A stretch of 64,000 nucleotides of DNA. Source: Adineta vaga. Lineage: Eukaryota; Animalia; Rotifera. Shown here one piece after another: positions 11,844-63,905 of this stretch. A program made the translations under genes and the position numbers. The stretch spans positions 20,026,001 to 20,090,000 of the forward strand of contig CP075492.1 in the NCBI GenBank assembly GCA_021613535.1, written 5' to 3'. Below the pieces are notes generated by a model that was not told the DNA's origin, ran no database searches, and worked only from the letters and a program-made list of their open reading frames with translations. Positions within the stretch are counted from its first letter, which is position 1, and each line of letters begins with the position of its first letter.

Positions 11844-11920
11844 TCTTGAGGGGTGTGGGTGTGGGTGAGAAATGTGCTTCCAATCTTCCCTTATACCCAC
11901 ACCCACACCCACCCTCAATC
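11844..11920. repeat. Inverted telomere-like palindrome
   Basis: TCTTGAGGGGTGTGGGTGTGGGTG...ACCCACACCCACACCCACCCTCAATC. Confidence 0.9.
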
Positions 11921-17763: not shown

Positions 17764-19031
17764 AAAATTATTTGTTTCATTGAAATTAAAATTAAATAAA
17801 TAACATATTTTATATTAGTTAACGGAAACAGAAGAGAATTTAATGAGAAGTTCACTTTAATGTCAAGAAATTCTTGTATTTATCGAGGAAAATCAATCAT
17901 AAAGACTCCATATGTTTTACTGTTTGATTAAAATCTAAACCAGAATGTGGGCGGGTGGATGCTAGGGATGTTACTTTGTCTTTACTTTATAAGATAAAGA
18001 TTATCTTTATTCTTTATAAAATAAAGATAAAGATTTTTTGTTGCTTTATCTTTTATTATAAAATGAAATAAAGAATAAAGAAGAAACTTTTTTTTCTAAA
18101 AAGCCTCAAATTACATCTTTTTCAGATAGTCTACAAAGACATATAAGATCAGAAAGAAAAAAAAGTTCACAATAAGGTTTTTTTCCATAAATCTTTCAGG
18201 AAGTGGCTATGTGCACCCAAACACTTCTAAGAAATTATTTAATGAAAACTAACTTATATTTATCTTGGATGAAATCACTTAATTTAATACTAATTTTAAT
18301 TTATTAACTATTTATTATATTCAAAAAAAATATATAAATTGAACATCATGACTACATGATTATATTACAATTACATAAATATGAACAAAATTTAATTTAA
18401 ATATAGATCAGTTAATTTAAAAACATTTCTAGTACTTCTTCTGGATTTTAAAAGAAATGTTCTTTTTTTAATTATCATATTCGGGCAAAAATTATTATGA
18501 TTTAGAAAATAAAGATAAGACTGCTGCAAAGATCATGATGGAAAAGTTTTATCTCAATAGAAATAAAAGAGATTATTCGAGCTTTCGTGTTCAACTGAAC
18601 ACATCATCAGGAATTGCTTCGTGATTTTCTTTATTTAGTTAAGTGAAATTATTTCCAGAAATTCAGATAGATGTGAATGAAATCAGATATAACAAATATA
18701 AAAATGGTGTTGAAATTATTAATGTTAATTATGTTGATGTTGATGTTGATCTTGATTTTGTTGGTAATGGTGACGATATTTTACAATGTTGATTTCATTG
18801 TTGTTTTTGTTGTTAATGATGTTGTTAATATTGTTATTATTTCAGTAAAATATGAATGATTTTTAACGATATGTATACAAGAAAGAAGAAGAAAGATAAA
18901 TAGGATTTAATCGATAAATATCTTATAACTACAATTAGTCATGTCAGTAAAACTAGGTAGTTTTACGTCCATGGTGGTTAGAAACCAAGGCTGATGACAT
19001 ATAAATACATGTTCGAAAGTCTAACTTAAGT

Positions 19032-19090
19032 AGGGTGTGGGTGTGGGTATCTCCTCTTCTTTCACACCCACACCCACACTCCCACCCCCA
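19032..19090. repeat. Inverted telomere-like palindrome
   Basis: AGGGTGTGGGTGTGGGT...CACACCCACACCCACACTCCCACCCCCA. Confidence 0.9.
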
Positions 19091-55451: not shown

Positions 55452-56153
55452 GTTTCTCTGATTCACAAGACTTCCAAAGAATGTATCAACGTTACGATGA
55501 AACACATAAAAAATAACTCAAAAAAAACTTCATTTCTAATCATTCAGACTTCTTCCTTATGTTTCTCTCATCTTATCATTACTTATTTATTCCAGAAAAA
55601 CATTAATCTTTTCTTTTTTTCTTCCAAACTAACTCTTTCGATTAGGTCACATAATTGATTTCTTCATTTTTAGATATAAATACTCACAATGCATAACAAA
55701 ACTCAACTGATAAGTCCCTTGAGAAAGGACGAAACTATAGTTGTAGGATTTCTCTTATATATAATACACACCCACACCCACCATAATCCACTGCTTCGAT
55801 CAATATATGACATTCTGCTTATACTACAAAAACCGTAATTCAAACTGAAAAAGGAAGTACTACATTTTGAAACTAACTGCCACCTCATATAACAGAACTT
55901 AACACATTACTTTAATTCGGAAAACACTTGAACGCACAAACTCTTATTTGTCGGAGCATTTATGAATCCACTCAAGTCGATCGAATGAATGCAAGACAAT
56001 CATGCAAAACTCGATCAAGATCGATACAATATCTTACTACAGAACTTCCTCCACAAAATCTATATTACCACCCTAATAACTCTAACCTCACTAATAACTC
56101 TAACCACCCGACTAACTCCCTACCAACAAAATCACAGAATAATATATAATTAT

Positions 56154-56191: not shown

Positions 56192-57375
56192 CAATATTTT
56201 TCTTCTTCTCTTAAATGAGATACTCATCATTTGGTATTTTCATTGTGAATATTATTTTCTGCGACTAAACGCACATGTTACAGATGCAGCACACAAACAA
56301 GATAAACTTTGTTCCCAAAAGAGGAAGAACAGAACAGAAAAGGTAAAGCAATTTTTTTGTCGTTAATTGACAATTACCAACGAAACATGTGACAAAACAA
56401 GTCAGTTCCCAACATAGCATACGTCATAGAAACGTCTTTTCATTGGTTCGTCTTTGATCGTAGGATCGGAAAAAAAAGATAAAACTATAGTGTAGGATGA
56501 TGAAAAAATAACATGTGCAAAAGTTATCCACTAACGTCTATTCATCATGATGTATATGGAATAATACTCTTTAGTGATTCACACACATCAACATTATTTG
56601 AAAAAACCAGTGACGTTATTGATTATTTATACAAAAATTAAGTTTTTTCCCGCAGTCATTCTCGCCCTTTCCACACATCCTCATGTTATGTTTTGTCATA
56701 TGTTAAATACAGTTAGCTATCTGTATATTGATTTCTTTATGTGAAGTGGTATTTAGCAGGTAAGAGTTTACTTTGGACAAAACTCGAAATAAACGTTCAT
56801 GATACGTTGCAGAGTAAACACGAGGGTGTAAGCAAATGTATTTTATTGTTCGACAAATCGATTCTATACGCCAATAGAATGTAAATGCTAAGAGATACTT
56901 CTAGTTTTCTTCCTTGCGACATATTTTATCTTGTAATTAAAACTATTCATGTGTTATAATATAAAGTTCTATTTTTTGCTATTAAATGTTGTTTTAATTG
57001 TCTTATAGAATATTTCTGTGGGTGACAGAGAAAATCTTTTCCTTTTGTTTACGTGAAATTCTTCTCAAAATATTATTTAGTCAACATCGTCGTAATAGCG
57101 TTAGGAAAGCCATGTATAAAATATCTGTAAAAACTAATATGTAGTAATTCAAATAAGATACTTTTTTCTTAAAAATATTGCAAGTTGAGCAGATAATTAG
57201 AGGTACGTAACTACTATGTTGCTGGTGGAAAAACGAGACGGCGTTTAGACTCGGAAATGTATTGAAAGCACTATGTTTTAGTTCAGAGTCAAGATCGAAA
57301 TTTAGGAAAAACATCTACCGATTTAAAAGGAATGTTTTCCCTGGCATACAATGATAGATATTCCTTCTTAAGATG

Positions 57376-57731
57376 AGCTGCCTAATTCGAGTTATAATAT
57401 AAATGAAGATTCAGCTTGTTGGAACTTCGAAAATAAATGAACAGAACGAAAACTAAAACTTTTGTTTATAGTAGAACTAGTTATAATTTTGATTTGCTAG
57501 ATTTTTAGTTCATTTATACGGATTTACTGTAGAGATAGGAATTGTTAGGAATAGACAGGAATAGATTTGTTTTAGTCTTACTTAATTATAACTCACATAT
57601 ACATGTGCATCTATGTTTAAATATGAAGTGTAAGTACGAATAAGTAAAACTATGACTTCCTCCAGCGCCAGTTTTATGCTCAGATATACTTTTGAAATCT
57701 CCATTTATATTCGAACACGAATTAGGCAGCT
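57376..57731. mobile_element. MITE-like element
   Basis: About 35-bp inverted ends: AGCTGCCTAATTCGAGTTATAATATAAATG and CATTTATATTCGAACACGAATTAGGCAGCT. Confidence 0.65.
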
Positions 57732-57915
57732 ACTCGCAATTTTTGTCTCTATTCTTCAGTACGGTCCGTATTGATGAACCATTCACCGCATTTGCAACAT
57801 AACACGAATGAATGAATATTACAAGGTTATTCCTTCAGCCGTTTAGAACACAGTCACGCGTGAACTTTCAGTTTAAACAACTTTTCTTTTTCAGATAAAA
57901 GTCGAAATAATTTTA

Positions 57916-59737
57916 ATGGCAAACAGCTCCGGATTTGAATATTTTGATAGACAATTAATAAATTCTCATTTGCAGTGTTCAATTTGCGGGGAACCTTTCA
58001 CGAAACCTTTAATCACTGAACTGAAAAAGAAACTAAATCAACAACAAACTCAAATCGAAAGTCTACAACACGATCAACAACAACTGAAAGAGCAAGTGGA
58101 TCAACAGCAACATAAAATGAGAGATCTACAAAACGATAAGGAACACCTGAACAAGAATGCAAATGACCAACAAATTCAAATTAATCAACTTCAGAAGAAG
58201 AATCAACAGCTGACAAATCAAATGGACCTAAGAGGTAGGCATATATATCCAAATTTTAATTGAAAACCGCCCGAGTTCACTGTTATTTACGTCATTTTGT
58301 GAAATACGACCTAAAAGAAATGTTGAAGGATAAGGGCAGAAAATTTTCAGCTAATACTTGTAAACCGAGTTTTAGCAGCGTAAAAAATGCAGACACAGGT
58401 GTAAAGCTGATGCGTTTCGAGTTCCGTATATAATGAAATTACTTAGTTTTCGAACTTTTAATAAAGTGACATGTAAAGTGTATACTAATCGCTAAGTGTT
58501 TGCAGTATCAGCATAGCAGGGTCTATCGTGCTTCAAATTTTTTATTCTAAAGGGATTGCGCTAACAGCTGTTTTGATAAAGCGTTGAATCATACCAACGA
58601 AATATGGCAAGACTATATGTTTGTTATAATTATAATTCTTCATAGTGTTTCATTAAGTTTTTTCTGATAAAAAATAACACTCATCATGAAAAAAATCAAA
58701 TATTATTGATAGTTTTTGTTCAGCATTTGAAAGTGACACGGACAATTTTACCACGGTTAAGTAAAAAATCAATCAAAATAGTTTCTTTTACATCAGATCC
58801 TATTGATTACAGTTTTGCAAAGTAAAGACGATAATATGTGCAGTAGAGGCGCAAACGTGATTATCGTTCGATTTCTCAAAGCTGTTCTCCCTGGGTGTTT
58901 ATACGAGACAACAATCTAGCTTCTCTGAAACCAATTGAATACCTCATAGGTTATTCATGATTTCTACTCCAGTATGCGAGTTCTTTGAAACACCGTTGCA
59001 ATAGTCATTAATTAAATAATTTAAGATGATCATAAAACATAATAAGCACCTAAAAACCTTCAAATTTCACTAAAAAAAGGAACAAATTCCAGTCTGCGTG
59101 ACAATTATGCTGAAAACTGATAAGGACAACGTATCTGAGAGTTTTTCTATTCGTGCGAATGAGAAAAATTAGTATGTTTGTTTGTATTCAGCACCAATCG
59201 AATTATTCTTTTCCCAAATTATTTTTAACGAATGTATTTCTTTTCATTTAGATCTTCTGCAAACTCTCGGATCCATTCGCAAAAAAACCACTTGAATCTG
59301 AAGGTGATGCTTGTGTTAAACGCCGGAAATGCAGCAATGGGTACGATACTGAGAAAGAAGACAAGCGTGGTGATATTGACGCATGCAAATCTTCTGTATA
59401 TACAGTTTCTTCACCTCTTTATCAAGCCTTTTCACCTCTTTATCAAGCCTTTTCACCTCCTTATGAACCTTCTTCACCTCTTTATCAAGCCTTTTCACCT
59501 CCTTATGAACCTTCTTCACCTATTTATCAACCTTCTTCACCTCCTTATGAACCTTCTTCACCTCCTTATGAACCTTCTTCACCTCCTTATGAATCTTCTT
59601 CACCTCCTTATCAAGCCTTTTCACCTCCTTATGAACCTTCTTCACCTCTTTATCAAGCCTTTTCACCTCCTTATGAACCTTCTTCACCTCTTTATCAACC
59701 TTCTTCACCTCCTTATGAACCTTCTTCACCTCCTTAA
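57916..59737 (+). CDS. Putative spliced gene: half-RING, coiled coil, NLS and CTD-like heptad tail (join uncertain)
   Basis: Exon 57916-58234 (LQCSICGEPF then a Gln-rich coil; donor GTAGG) and exon 59252-59737 (acceptor TTTAG). Direct joining needs a 1-nt correction in the A7 run at 59281. Confidence 0.5.
59399..59734 (+). repeat. 16 x 21-bp tandem repeat encoding Y-x-x-x-S-P-x heptads
   Basis: Units TATGAACCTTCTTCACCTCCT and TATCAAGCCTTTTCACCTCCT, followed in register by TAA at 59735. Confidence 0.95.
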
Positions 59738-60083
59738 AATCCTCATTCCTTGTTTACTAGCTCTGATTATTTGGATAAAGAGTGATTTTTTGAATTATAT
59801 ATGAGGTGTAAACTATTTAATTCCGAATGATGAGAAGCATGAAAATGTTATTGTTGTACTTTTTTATATTTAATTAATCCAGATGATCACATCTCAAATA
59901 AATTCATGAATCCGCTATAAAGCATCGCATTGATCTCATGCTGTACGAGTTTTAAATGCCCTACGAAAATACTAAGTCACTGTGATTTTCGAATGAAATT
60001 TCGTCTAGTCCAAAATTTGTGACTTCACATGCTGCCGCTACTTGACGAAGCATACATTCATCATCATTGATTTGTAGCAGTTG

Positions 60084-60138
60084 TGAGGGTGGGTGTGGGT
60101 GTGCATCGAGAGGAAAGATACCCACACCCACACTCTCA
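60084..60138. repeat. Inverted telomere-like palindrome
   Basis: TGAGGGTGGGTGTGGGTGTG...ACCCACACCCACACTCTCA. Confidence 0.9.
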
Positions 60139-60175
60139 GAGTTTTGATATGTTGCTATTAACTAACAGAAGAGAA

Positions 60176-60247
60176 CATCAGATAGTTTAATTGGTAGAAT
60201 AGCCGACCAGTTATCCGAAGATGTAGGTTCGAGTCCTGCTCTGATTT
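60176..60247 (+). tRNA. tRNA-like sequence, probably a pseudogene or SINE head (possible AGT anticodon)
   Basis: Acceptor ATCAGA/TCTGAT, A-box TAGTTTAATTGG, B-box GGTTCGAGTCC; the anticodon stem pairs poorly. Confidence 0.6.
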
Positions 60248-61349
60248 AATGATCTTTTCGAATAAGTTTCTCGTACTTATTCTAGCATATCTATGTGGAT
60301 ACTTTGAATAAATTGAATCTTCTCGTGGACAAAATGAAAAGATTTTCTAATATTTGATTGTTTTTATATCTATTATCAAACACATCCACACCCTACAATA
60401 AATGTAATGGATATTTTAACAAATCGAATAACATTTTCTACAACAATTAAAACTATTACTTTACAATCATCGACAATCACTTATATAATCATAGATATAC
60501 AACAGGTTTGTTATTTAATATTTGAAATTTTTATAGAGAATAAAAATATGATTTTCATAATTCGTTTGAGATATTTGAAATCAAATTTTATAATTAATAT
60601 TTTTATAAAATTATTATTTTTAATAGAGTTTTCTTTTCTTTCATTAGTTACTTCTTTAATAGAGTTTTTTTCAAGCTTTTAAAATAACTGTATCAGTATA
60701 ACAGAGAATTATACCATAAAATCTGATAATATTTTAGATACATATGGTTATTTATATAATAATGATTATGATACTGTTTATATAAGCAGAAATTTACTCG
60801 TATTAAATGATAATAATGGTGAAAATTATCAGTTCTTAATCTCATATATTCATTTATATCGACACAGCCTTTCAGTTTTGAGTAATTTTAGACTGAAGAA
60901 AGTATTGACTACTTATATAAATATAGTAGATGGAATCGGTAGAGTTATCATAAAGTTCTATTTGGAATCAGCATAATTAAAGTTAGAACACACGTTTAGA
61001 TGAATCTGTTCTGGAAAAAGTTGAATATTAATCGAAGTCATCCAATGATATTGGATTGATTACTTGAAACAGTTAATTTGTAATTGGTTTCGACTGACTG
61101 TATCTGCGTTGATTTTTCTGTTGAAAATATCTTTGTCATGCATACTCTTTACACTCATATCAATGTCAATAGCTACTTTTGCAGTAAAAATGAATTTCTT
61201 CCTGAAGATATTTCAATAGAATGAAATTAATACCATGTTTTAGATATTCAAAATATTAGAATTATGGGTAAGGTGTAAATGAGTATATTTTATTTGGATT
61301 AAAGCGCAAAAACGATTAAGTGTTCTGTCTGATAAGAATATGTTTAAAT

Positions 61350-63905
61350 TTAGTTCGAAGATATTTGATTATTTCGTCTTTGTTGACATTTTGCAGTTAT
61401 TTTGTGTAATAAAGTAGTGATGAAAGGAACAACAAGTCTGAGAAAAGTTGTCAGTCCTCCATAAAGACCTAATAAAGTTGTGATGATAACAACGAAGTTC
61501 TTCCGTTGAATAAGTGTAACAGAACATGAAAGCGGACGACATTGAGTATAGTATTGATTAAAAGATACACTTGATGAACATGTTTCAATGAACATTTCTT
61601 GAACAAGTATTTCAACATTACCATTAGATACAAAACGAGTTTCATTTTCATTTAATGGTTGAGGTGAAGGTAAAGATAAATTCAAATATGAAGTTAACAA
61701 ATTGATACAAGTTTGTTCATACATACATTCAATTGTACTTCGTAGAAGTGCTTCGAGTGGTGTACATCCAACAAAATATCCAGGAATGAAAGGTGTTGAT
61801 GATTGTGTACAAGCTGCTGATGTTAAACAATTACAATTACCATACGATTGTGGTTTCATAAAAATCTTTGAAGTAAAAGTAATGTTATTTAAGACAGGAT
61901 ACCAATTTGTTGAATAGAGAGAAACTAATGCATTACTTTGCATCATACCACGAATGAATTGAAAATTATTTAAATATTGATTAGGTAAAGTTGATTGAAA
62001 TTGAGCTAATGATGCATTTATTTGTGCATTAAATTGATTAATATGAATTAACGAAGCAGCAACAAACGATGAAGTCAAATAATTTTGTCGAGCTATATTA
62101 ACAGCATCTTTAGCAAGATTACAGAGAGAACGAAGAGCTTGATAATGAGAAAATATTGTTCCTTCAAGTGTAAATGCATTTGTTACTGCATATCGTACAT
62201 CTAATGAATCATAAACTCGAAAGAGTTGTTGTAAATATGTTTGAGAAATAAAATCACTTGTACAAATTGAATGAAAGTCGCATTCATATTCAATAAATGA
62301 TGAATATGAAGTAGAAACTTGTGAACATGGACAATTAATCGTATCCACACTATATTGTTGTTGCAATTGTTGATATCGTTCGAACGATGGTTTTGTCACA
62401 GTCAATATTGTTGTATCATAAATCAATAAATTGTAGAGTATAAAGATAAATAATGTAATAGAAACAATAATGAGATAAACATATGTTGCTCTTTGTTGTT
62501 GTTTGATAGATTTAATTGTATTTTGACGTGGATGATCGAATACATTTATACTTCGTAATCGACGAAAAAGTCGTATATGAAAAGAAATTAAAATAATTTC
62601 TTCTTGTTGTTGTGTTCGTCGATGAATCATAAGAAAAAAAGTACTAATAATAAAAGGAATAATGATACGTAGAGATACAGATAATCCACCGATAAGACCA
62701 GTTATAATTGTAATAGTTTCAAATATACTATTACGTCTTAGAATTGTATACGAACATGATGCTGGTTGACATTGATCAAAATAAGATGAATAATTCAATA
62801 CTTGACTCCAATTTTCAATAAAAAGTTCAGAAAGTAAAGTAGATACCGAATCATTCATTGCAAATCGACTAGGTAGAGATGAATTCAGACGTTCCATTGG
62901 TTGAAATAGTGTTGAATTATAAAAATCAATAATTGTAGTAAGACAATCTTGATTATCGTACAAACATTGAAGTGTTGATTGAAGTAATGATTCCAATGGA
63001 AAACAAGCTTGATAAATGTTAGGTACTGTTGATTTAGGTGCCCAGAAATATTTAAAAGTATATAAACCAACATTTGTTTTACAAGTAATATCATTTGCAC
63101 ATGCACATATATGCGAGGAATTCCCATCTTTATTAGTAATCTTTGTTATGCTAAATGTAATAGCATTTGCAGGTGAACCATATAAATTAAAATCTGCATT
63201 GTTTACAGAAGCAAAAATTTGATTGACAAAGGTCATATTACGAACAAGTTGAAAAAAGCTTAAACATCTATCCACTAATCCTGATTGAAAGCGAGTGATT
63301 ATCGAATACATTTGATAGTTAAAGATATCAATTGAAAGAAGATCAGCTGTAACCAATTGTGTTTGTTTAAATTTATCGAGTGAACTTGAAATTGTCGTGT
63401 TCATCAATGTACATAAAGTTTGTAAGTAAATAAATAATTGAAATGTAAGACGAAAATCAGGTCGACCACGTGCACTGCTTAAATCAATTTGGAGTAGTGT
63501 ACGTAAACTACTGACGAATGAAAATGTTATAAATGTACTTGAACATACTTGATGATAAGATGGTTGAAGGGCAATGAATTGTTTATAAGCTATATTAATC
63601 TGTGTACATGGACATTGAAGAGAAGAACCATATTCGCTTTGTGATTTCAAGTAAAGTACAGTATCTATAGAGGGTTGTTTTACTTCAATTGATTTTGTTT
63701 GTATACTCAGCATTGTATAAAAGAAAAGAATAATAAATCCAGTAATAAGACATAATATATAGATTCGTGTTGCCCAACGTTGTTTTTGGATTTCTCTCGG
63801 TTCTTGTTGATTCGAAGATTCGAAAATATTCATTTTAACAATTAAATACCAAATGCGTTTAGCTAAGATTTCCATTCGTTGTAGCAATGACACATTGAAT
63901 TCCAT
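61350..63905 (-). CDS. 851-aa membrane protein with two tandem Cys-rich extracellular modules, unknown function
   Basis: Each half has a TM segment, CPC, (Y/F)H..C.S.F, C.P.E.LL.ST..C.Y, Y..QC.P.SCS and a TM segment with GL.GGL. Confidence 0.85.
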   Translation of the reverse strand: MEFNVSLLQRMEILAKRIWYLIVKMNIFESSNQQEPREIQKQRWATRIYILCLITGFIILFFYTMLSIQTKSIEVKQPSIDTVLYLKSQSEYGSSLQCPCTQINIAYKQFIALQPSYHQVCSSTFITFSFVSSLRTLLQIDLSSARGRPDFRLTFQLFIYLQTLCTLMNTTISSSLDKFKQTQLVTADLLSIDIFNYQMYSIITRFQSGLVDRCLSFFQLVRNMTFVNQIFASVNNADFNLYGSPANAITFSITKITNKDGNSSHICACANDITCKTNVGLYTFKYFWAPKSTVPNIYQACFPLESLLQSTLQCLYDNQDCLTTIIDFYNSTLFQPMERLNSSLPSRFAMNDSVSTLLSELFIENWSQVLNYSSYFDQCQPASCSYTILRRNSIFETITIITGLIGGLSVSLRIIIPFIISTFFLMIHRRTQQQEEIILISFHIRLFRRLRSINVFDHPRQNTIKSIKQQQRATYVYLIIVSITLFIFILYNLLIYDTTILTVTKPSFERYQQLQQQYSVDTINCPCSQVSTSYSSFIEYECDFHSICTSDFISQTYLQQLFRVYDSLDVRYAVTNAFTLEGTIFSHYQALRSLCNLAKDAVNIARQNYLTSSFVAASLIHINQFNAQINASLAQFQSTLPNQYLNNFQFIRGMMQSNALVSLYSTNWYPVLNNITFTSKIFMKPQSYGNCNCLTSAACTQSSTPFIPGYFVGCTPLEALLRSTIECMYEQTCINLLTSYLNLSLPSPQPLNENETRFVSNGNVEILVQEMFIETCSSSVSFNQYYTQCRPLSCSVTLIQRKNFVVIITTLLGLYGGLTTFLRLVVPFITTLLHKITAKCQQRRNNQISSN

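Follow-up and report, generated by a model that had tools for sequence, protein, structure and literature searches.

Analysis of a 64,000-nucleotide stretch of the Adineta vaga genome (contig CP075492.1, positions 20,026,001 to 20,090,000 of the forward strand; hereafter the window, with positions counted from its first letter) revealed a tandem array of 21-bp units close to its end, one frame of which encodes heptads resembling those that RPB1, a subunit of RNA polymerase II, carries in its C-terminal domain (CTD). The array lies downstream of a short open reading frame (ORF) to which it may be joined by splicing, and the locus, at about 20,085,500 on this contig (C3, 20,354,754 bases), is situated 269 kb from the chromosome end. 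The candidate gene comprises the following features.

57916-58234, forward strand: candidate first exon; the ATG ORF continues to a stop at 58261-58263 (115 aa).
58235-59251, forward strand: putative intron of 1017 nt, donor gag/GTAGGC, acceptor tttcatttag/A; a single-copy sequence in which each of the three frames contains stops.
59252-59398, forward strand: the 49 unique codons of the heptad exon, which include the motif KK-x10-KRRK.
59281-59287, forward strand: A7 homopolymer; one base fewer would put the junction of 58235 to 59252 in the heptad frame.
59399-59734, forward strand: heptad array, 16 x 21 bp with a 42-bp higher-order unit, encoding Y-x-x-x-S-P-x heptads.
59735-59737, forward strand: TAA stop in register, a TAT changed to TAA.
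59897-59902, forward strand: AATAAA, 160 nt past the stop, which in such AT-rich surroundings is a weak signal.

The heptad frame is stop-free from position 59252, immediately behind a TAG at 59249-59251 whose last two bases are also the AG of a good acceptor. Its translation of 161 aa divides into 49 unique residues and, after them, exactly 16 heptads, encoded by units all of exact 21-bp length. The stop replaces the Tyr codon of a would-be heptad 17, and a degenerate copy of the unit continues beyond it. Tandem Repeats Finder (TRF) detected the array both at period 21 (15.7 copies) and, as a higher-order repeat, at period 42 (7.8 copies, 93% matches, score 534), and the array is far beyond chance expectation. 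In this one frame the heptads follow the pattern Y-[E/Q]-[P/A]-[S/F]-S-P-[P/L], and the residues were counted as follows.

Heptad position 1: Y 16
Heptad position 2: E 8, Q 7, T 1
Heptad position 3: P 9, A 5, V 1, S 1
Heptad position 4: S 11, F 5
Heptad position 5: S 16
Heptad position 6: P 16
Heptad position 7: P 10, L 5, I 1

An earlier note on this DNA, made by a model from the letters alone, had described an open frame from 59252 with 16 heptads and TAA in register, in which Y1, S5 and P6 are invariant and P3 is common; all these sequence facts were recovered on re-reading, with counts of 16/16, 16/16, 16/16 and 9/16, respectively. The motif KK-x10-KRRK was likewise found in the translation and, as a pattern, it matches a classical bipartite nuclear localization signal (NLS), in which 10-12 residues separate two basic clusters. 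Because the copied unit is free of stops, three of the array's six frames are open or close to it. A second forward frame, beginning at an ATG at 59232 and coding for 190 aa, is open across the array, and the minus-strand frame is interrupted once, by a stop at 59520-59522.

A phmmer search of PDB with the 161-residue translation matched RPB1 CTDs only, aligned in register and with E values down to 8e-34, under heavy composition bias. As judged by sequence, the resemblance to the CTD that the earlier note had pointed out is objectively real. The Pfam model of the CTD repeat, PF05001 (RNA_pol_Rpb1_R), did not match the translation even at E<=1 and does match several other tails that do not belong to RPB1, which indicates that within the Y...SP class the array is a divergent case. 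This genome's own RPB1 3' end, with Y-S-P-T-S-P-x repeats, was located on contig C5 at about 15.918-15.920 Mb. In agreement with the earlier note, for which the upstream exon is not RPB1, the upstream ORF showed no RPB1 similarity in Pfam or PDB.

Comparison of the 16 units at the nucleotide level revealed that the codons of Tyr, Ser5 and Pro6 are TAT, TCA and CCT in every unit, and that 8 of the 21 nucleotide columns vary, giving 8 unit types in all; the amplification must therefore be recent. The genuine RPB1 CTD of the same genome uses TAT/TAC, TCA/TCT/AGT and CCA/CCT/CCG at Y1, S5 and P6. The invariance of these three residues is thus DNA identity left by recent amplification and not selection. 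The array, then, has arisen lately or been homogenised, and selection on the protein has left no signature in it; synonymous codon variety among the repeats, which would mark such selection, was looked for in the array and was not found. A search of the assembly, which comprises 100,824,805 bases in six contigs, found the 21-bp unit nowhere else in the genome, and the DNA between the candidate exons is also single copy.

In the upstream ORF a single C-x2-C motif precedes a coiled coil rich in Gln and Lys, the latter itself built on a 63-bp tandem unit (TRF period 63, 2.2 copies). It had been interpreted as a half-RING plus coiled coil. Pfam gave only sub-threshold matches to coiled coils. The RING is not supported: Pfam listed no RING family in the ORF, and of the eight ligands of a C3HC4 or C3H2C3 cross-brace only the one C-x2-C pair is present. 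A U-box scored E=0.017 (15.7 bits against a cut-off of 21.4), and the PDB search returned coiled-coil noise alone. No paralog of the ORF was found in this genome and no homolog by word search. Its codon score is weakly positive (+9.3 over 106 codons).

Codon usage was assessed with a log-odds model trained on the 16 long ORFs of the window. The 49 unique codons of the heptad frame scored +9.36, and true coding windows averaged 9.18 +/- 4.8 on leave-one-out; the unique part of the ATG frame scored -3.86, a value typical of off-frames, and the third frame (frame C), full of stops, scored -40.5. All of the positive signal of the heptad frame is downstream of the A7 run (59288-59398, +9.55), and upstream of the run the heptad frame and frame C score equally. 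These values provide modest evidence that the heptad frame has a coding role, or had one until recently. The acceptor at 59252 also resembles genuine short-intron acceptors of this genome.

Several observations weigh against a coding heptad exon. The frame lacks an ATG. Of the donors in the upstream ORF the best, at 58235 (gag/GTAGGC, after 319 nt), is in phase 1 and the acceptor at 59252 is in phase 0 for the heptads; the join of the two reads frame C and stops at the TGA at 59291-59293, 14 codons in. No start-bearing upstream exon that would be joined in phase by these sites, as expected of a protein-coding exon, was found, and the routes that do lead in frame to the heptads are a weak donor at 58096 (caa/GTGGAT), a purine-rich acceptor at 59304 or an A run one base shorter; this list covers the joins examined. 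An intron of 1017 nt is atypical beside the two RPB1 CTD introns of this genome, which are about 55 nt long. In the window, 34% of the other stop-free stretches of 49 codons, a set that includes unmasked short exons, score as high as the unique part of the heptad exon. Only one of the variable columns of the unit is a third codon position, the variation among units being mostly at first and second positions. The earlier note had proposed RNA sequencing as a check on strand and splicing; in the runs presumed to be RNA, no contig was obtained from 57300-60300 on the unique exon parts or the junction. From one of these runs came five contigs, 31-87 nt long and of depth 2-4, none of which lay outside the array; the other runs covered the flanking dispersed repeats only. 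The array contigs are compatible with trace DNA and trace RNA alike, because repeated words are the first to pass the abundance threshold of the assembler.

The note had also named the A7 run at 59281 as a point to be verified. An independent DNA contig from 2013 covers 57659-59436 without differences or gaps, which confirms that A7 is real in this strain. Two other routes into the heptads were considered and rejected. The short and typical-looking intron 59172-59251 (GTATGT...TAG, 80 nt) cannot feed the heptad frame since no upstream frame fits: at the donor 59172, phase 0 has a stop three codons earlier, phase 2 creates a TAA at the junction and phase 1 enters frame C. A programmed -1 frameshift on the A7 run seems very unlikely: read in frame C, the seven A's begin at the first base of a codon, a register other than the canonical slippery one.

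The reading that we prefer, and to which we would give an even chance, is that the locus is a subtelomeric orphan gene, or a gene only just turned by frameshift into a relic, with a young coding minisatellite at its end and a repeat unit that is CTD-like by coincidence. The last exon of such a lineage-restricted gene would end in the 21/42-bp minisatellite, and the array would encode a disordered Tyr/Ser-Pro heptad tail in the frame favoured by codon usage. The tail would have become CTD-like through convergence of a short repeat unit, without RPB1 ancestry. A translated product would combine a coiled-coil, presumably oligomerising, N-terminal part with the basic KK-x10-KRRK patch and 16 S-P sites, which would be suited to proline-directed kinases. 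Nuclear or CTD-related activity of the tail can be offered purely as conjecture.

The main rival explanation, possible but less favoured, is that the array is a non-coding minisatellite, placed in a 3' untranslated region or in intergenic subtelomeric DNA, whose heptad frame stayed open through 16-fold copying of a stop-free unit. The product, if any, would then be a coiled-coil protein of about 120 aa ending at the TGA at 59291-59293, or the unspliced 115-aa ORF. This account is consistent with the frame C reading of the best donor and acceptor pair, with frames that are open by construction and with equal scores of the heptad frame and frame C ahead of the A7 run, as well as with units that lack synonymous variation, the absence of homologs in the searches and a heptad frame lacking RNA support. 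It has more difficulty with the 37 unique codons that separate the A7 run from the array: they are stop-free in the heptad frame, for which we estimate a chance of about 6%, and they are the codons that carry the coding-like score of +9.55.

The earlier note had itself arrived at a nuclear mimic or decoy for CTD kinases, phosphatases or readers. Spelled out, this would be a protein oligomerised by the coiled coil and bearing an NLS, whose Y-E/Q-P-S-S-P-P repeats would titrate these factors, by analogy with PIE-1 and other repressors of the germline that act against phosphorylation of CTD Ser2; we consider this very improbable. In its favour are the exclusive and in-register PDB matches to RPB1 CTDs, the regularity of Y1, S5, P6 and, in part, P3, and the presence of the basic motif. 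There is also precedent, since on several occasions unrelated proteins have independently come to block the phosphorylation of CTD Ser2 (10.1101/2021.07.12.452040), and short motifs that mimic the CTD and interact with Nrd1 are described for Trf4 and Sen1 (PMC4186968, PMC7110113). On the other side, no exon or junction contigs were obtained and the best splice pair is out of frame; the CTD-repeat model that recognises several other non-RPB1 tails is silent on this one; the invariant positions are invariant as DNA; and the weak in-frame splice at 59304 deletes the KK half of the putative NLS. Our searches found no homolog in which the Y...SP register could be seen to be conserved, and there is no conservation in any relative.

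A related proposal, that the tail is translated through the weak in-frame splice or an undetected upstream exon, is likewise a long shot. The product might then be a multimerised nuclear CTD look-alike devoid of Ser2 that sequesters Ser5-directed kinases, capping enzyme or WW/CID readers, or that enters Pol II condensates. If this were true, the gene would be a newborn, repeat-based modulator of transcription in an asexual rotifer, independent of PIE-1, Pgc and Pem-1, and a handle on transcription control in bdelloid rotifers. A tail that is made and binds CTD factors would be a natural experiment in the birth of a CTD-like scaffold from a 21-bp minisatellite. For the present the array is mostly of cautionary value: recent amplification of DNA is by itself enough to yield a heptad register that looks perfectly conserved.

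It is highly improbable that the real gene is the single-exon ORF in the other forward frame, which runs from the ATG at 59232 to a stop at 59802-59804 and encodes 190 aa with Leu/His-rich L-H-L-L-M-N-L heptads. This ORF starts at an ATG of its own, requires no splicing and stays open over 55 unique codons and the whole array, but its codon usage scores -3.86 in the unique part and -8.1 in the array, values typical of off-frames to which only 1.6% of true coding windows descend, and it has no Pfam match. A gene on the minus strand was rejected, its K/E-rich frame being broken by the stop noted above and having no ATG.

No homolog of the 49 unique residues of the heptad exon was found by word search. 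Paralogs with a full RING plus heptads, which the earlier note had suggested as a further check, were not found in this genome either, where heptad matches elsewhere were limited to the RPB1 CTD on C5 plus an unrelated array of 21-bp period on C6. An exhaustive protein search of the library gave 605 hits at E<=0.001; among the best 150, the best-matching stretch falls in the repeat part in nearly every case, and the few that start earlier (P0046, P0075) were recognised by inspection as heptad-repeat matches. Four exact ORFs of the window, two long controls included, were absent from the protein collection, and therefore the missing self-match is uninformative while the lack of orthologs in the other sampled species stands.

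Among the best 150 of the 605 hits, 43 have an RPB1 body and 107 do not, and 52 of the latter carry at least five consecutive in-register Y...SP heptads, although some of these may be CTD-only fragments of RPB1 genes. The following are examples.

P0046 (L021:6001-6966): encoded by a single ORF of a 633-kb eukaryotic contig; its zinc-binding head, truncated and with weak matches to zf-TRAF/Sina, leads into a coiled coil and a tail of 17 Y...SP heptads (Y-R-P-S-S-P-S).
P0088: RING and VWA with a CTD-like tail.
P0082: MATH with a CTD-like tail.
P0014: RRM, SPT5-KOW and TPR with a CTD-like tail.
P0056 and P0096: RPB2 domain 7 followed by long CTD-like heptad runs of the Y-A-P-S-S-P-A type.

As far as sequence goes, the CTD-like tail is therefore not unique in kind and recurs on many unrelated proteins; with such tails scattered so widely, resemblance alone is no indicator of function. 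P0046 was considered as a relative of the candidate gene and rejected, as it shows no similarity to exon 1 and is an analog only. It is 25-33% identical to TRAF-like genes of this genome, and this distant kinship, together with the lack of exon 1 similarity, indicates that the architecture recurs by convergence in independent cases. The P0046 gene sits among RING/Sina and RING-Kelch genes. In P0056 and P0096 the CTD-like tail is carried by the second-largest polymerase subunit.

The six chromosomes of A. vaga have a telomere repeat of the (TGTGGG)n type and dynamic subtelomeres rich in transposons, foreign genes and rearrangements (PMC8494291); by its position the locus falls within such a subtelomeric zone. 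The window contains 33 telomere-type (TGTGGG)n matches against 0.04 expected. The candidate gene lies in a unique 2.4-kb segment flanked on both sides by repeats, the following of which were delimited.

57373-57735: element of about 363 bp resembling a miniature inverted-repeat transposable element (MITE), with 36-nt terminal inverted repeats at 57376-57411 and 57696-57731, 180 nt upstream of the candidate start.
60082-60138: telomere-repeat hairpin of (TGTGGG)n, with two 19-nt arms that are 89% complementary, 345 nt past the heptad stop.
60136-60395: repeat of about 260 bp, dispersed in at least 30 copies that mostly lie close to chromosome ends, with a depth of 1900-2400 in DNA run X2.

The MITE-like element has at least 30 genomic copies of 66-95% identity and reached a depth of 740-1490 in run X2, compared with about 45 for unique DNA. 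The dispersed repeat directly abuts the telomere-repeat hairpin. Telomere-type stretches are scattered over the window, often as inverted pairs that form hairpins (e.g. 1875-1943, 11849-11912, 19031-19083 and 55767-55781). The next gene downstream is an intron-free ORF of 851 aa on the minus strand (61350-63905), which appears internally duplicated, with hydrophobic segments by eye; it had no Pfam match at E<=0.01. The array on C6 (C6:4992667-4999095) extends over more than 6 kb, is composed of 21-bp subunits (periods 42, 63 and 105) and is open for at least 569 aa on the minus strand. It encodes His/Asp/Gln/Lys-rich heptads and is thus a second, much larger heptad-coding minisatellite of this genome.

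Compared with the RPB1 CTD, the array shares tandem heptads with Tyr1 and Ser5-Pro6, and Pro3 in part of the units. Its heptads are not attached to an RPB1 body. Ser2 is absent, being replaced by E, Q or T, position 4 is S or F and position 7 is P, L or I, so that the Ser2, Thr4 and Ser7 phospho-acceptors of the CTD are not found in the heptads. The repeats are near-identical as DNA while the genuine CTD is codon-diverse, and PF05001 does not match them. PIE-1, Pgc, Pem-1, Trf4 and Sen1 are known precedents of interference with the CTD or of its imitation by other proteins. They rely on one or two short motifs, in proteins that are otherwise conserved and for which expression and function are established, whereas the 16 near-identical repeats described here belong to an orphan locus known from DNA. 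CCCH fingers or other domains shared with repressors of the PIE-1 type were not detected in the Pfam search.

The candidate gene resembles the non-RPB1 proteins with CTD-like tails in joining a run of Y-x-x-x-S-P-x heptads to an unrelated N-terminal part, often of the RING/TRAF or coiled-coil type, and P0046 displays the very architecture that the earlier note had proposed, a truncated zinc-binding head, coiled coil and heptad tail; most of those tails match PF05001 and the present one does not. A parallel in setting is provided by the coding minisatellites of fast-evolving subtelomeric genes, with which the locus shares a young, single-locus 21/42-bp array bounded by the MITE-like element, the telomere-repeat hairpin and the dispersed repeat, and from which it differs in that the unit encoded here happens to be of the CTD-like Y...SP class.

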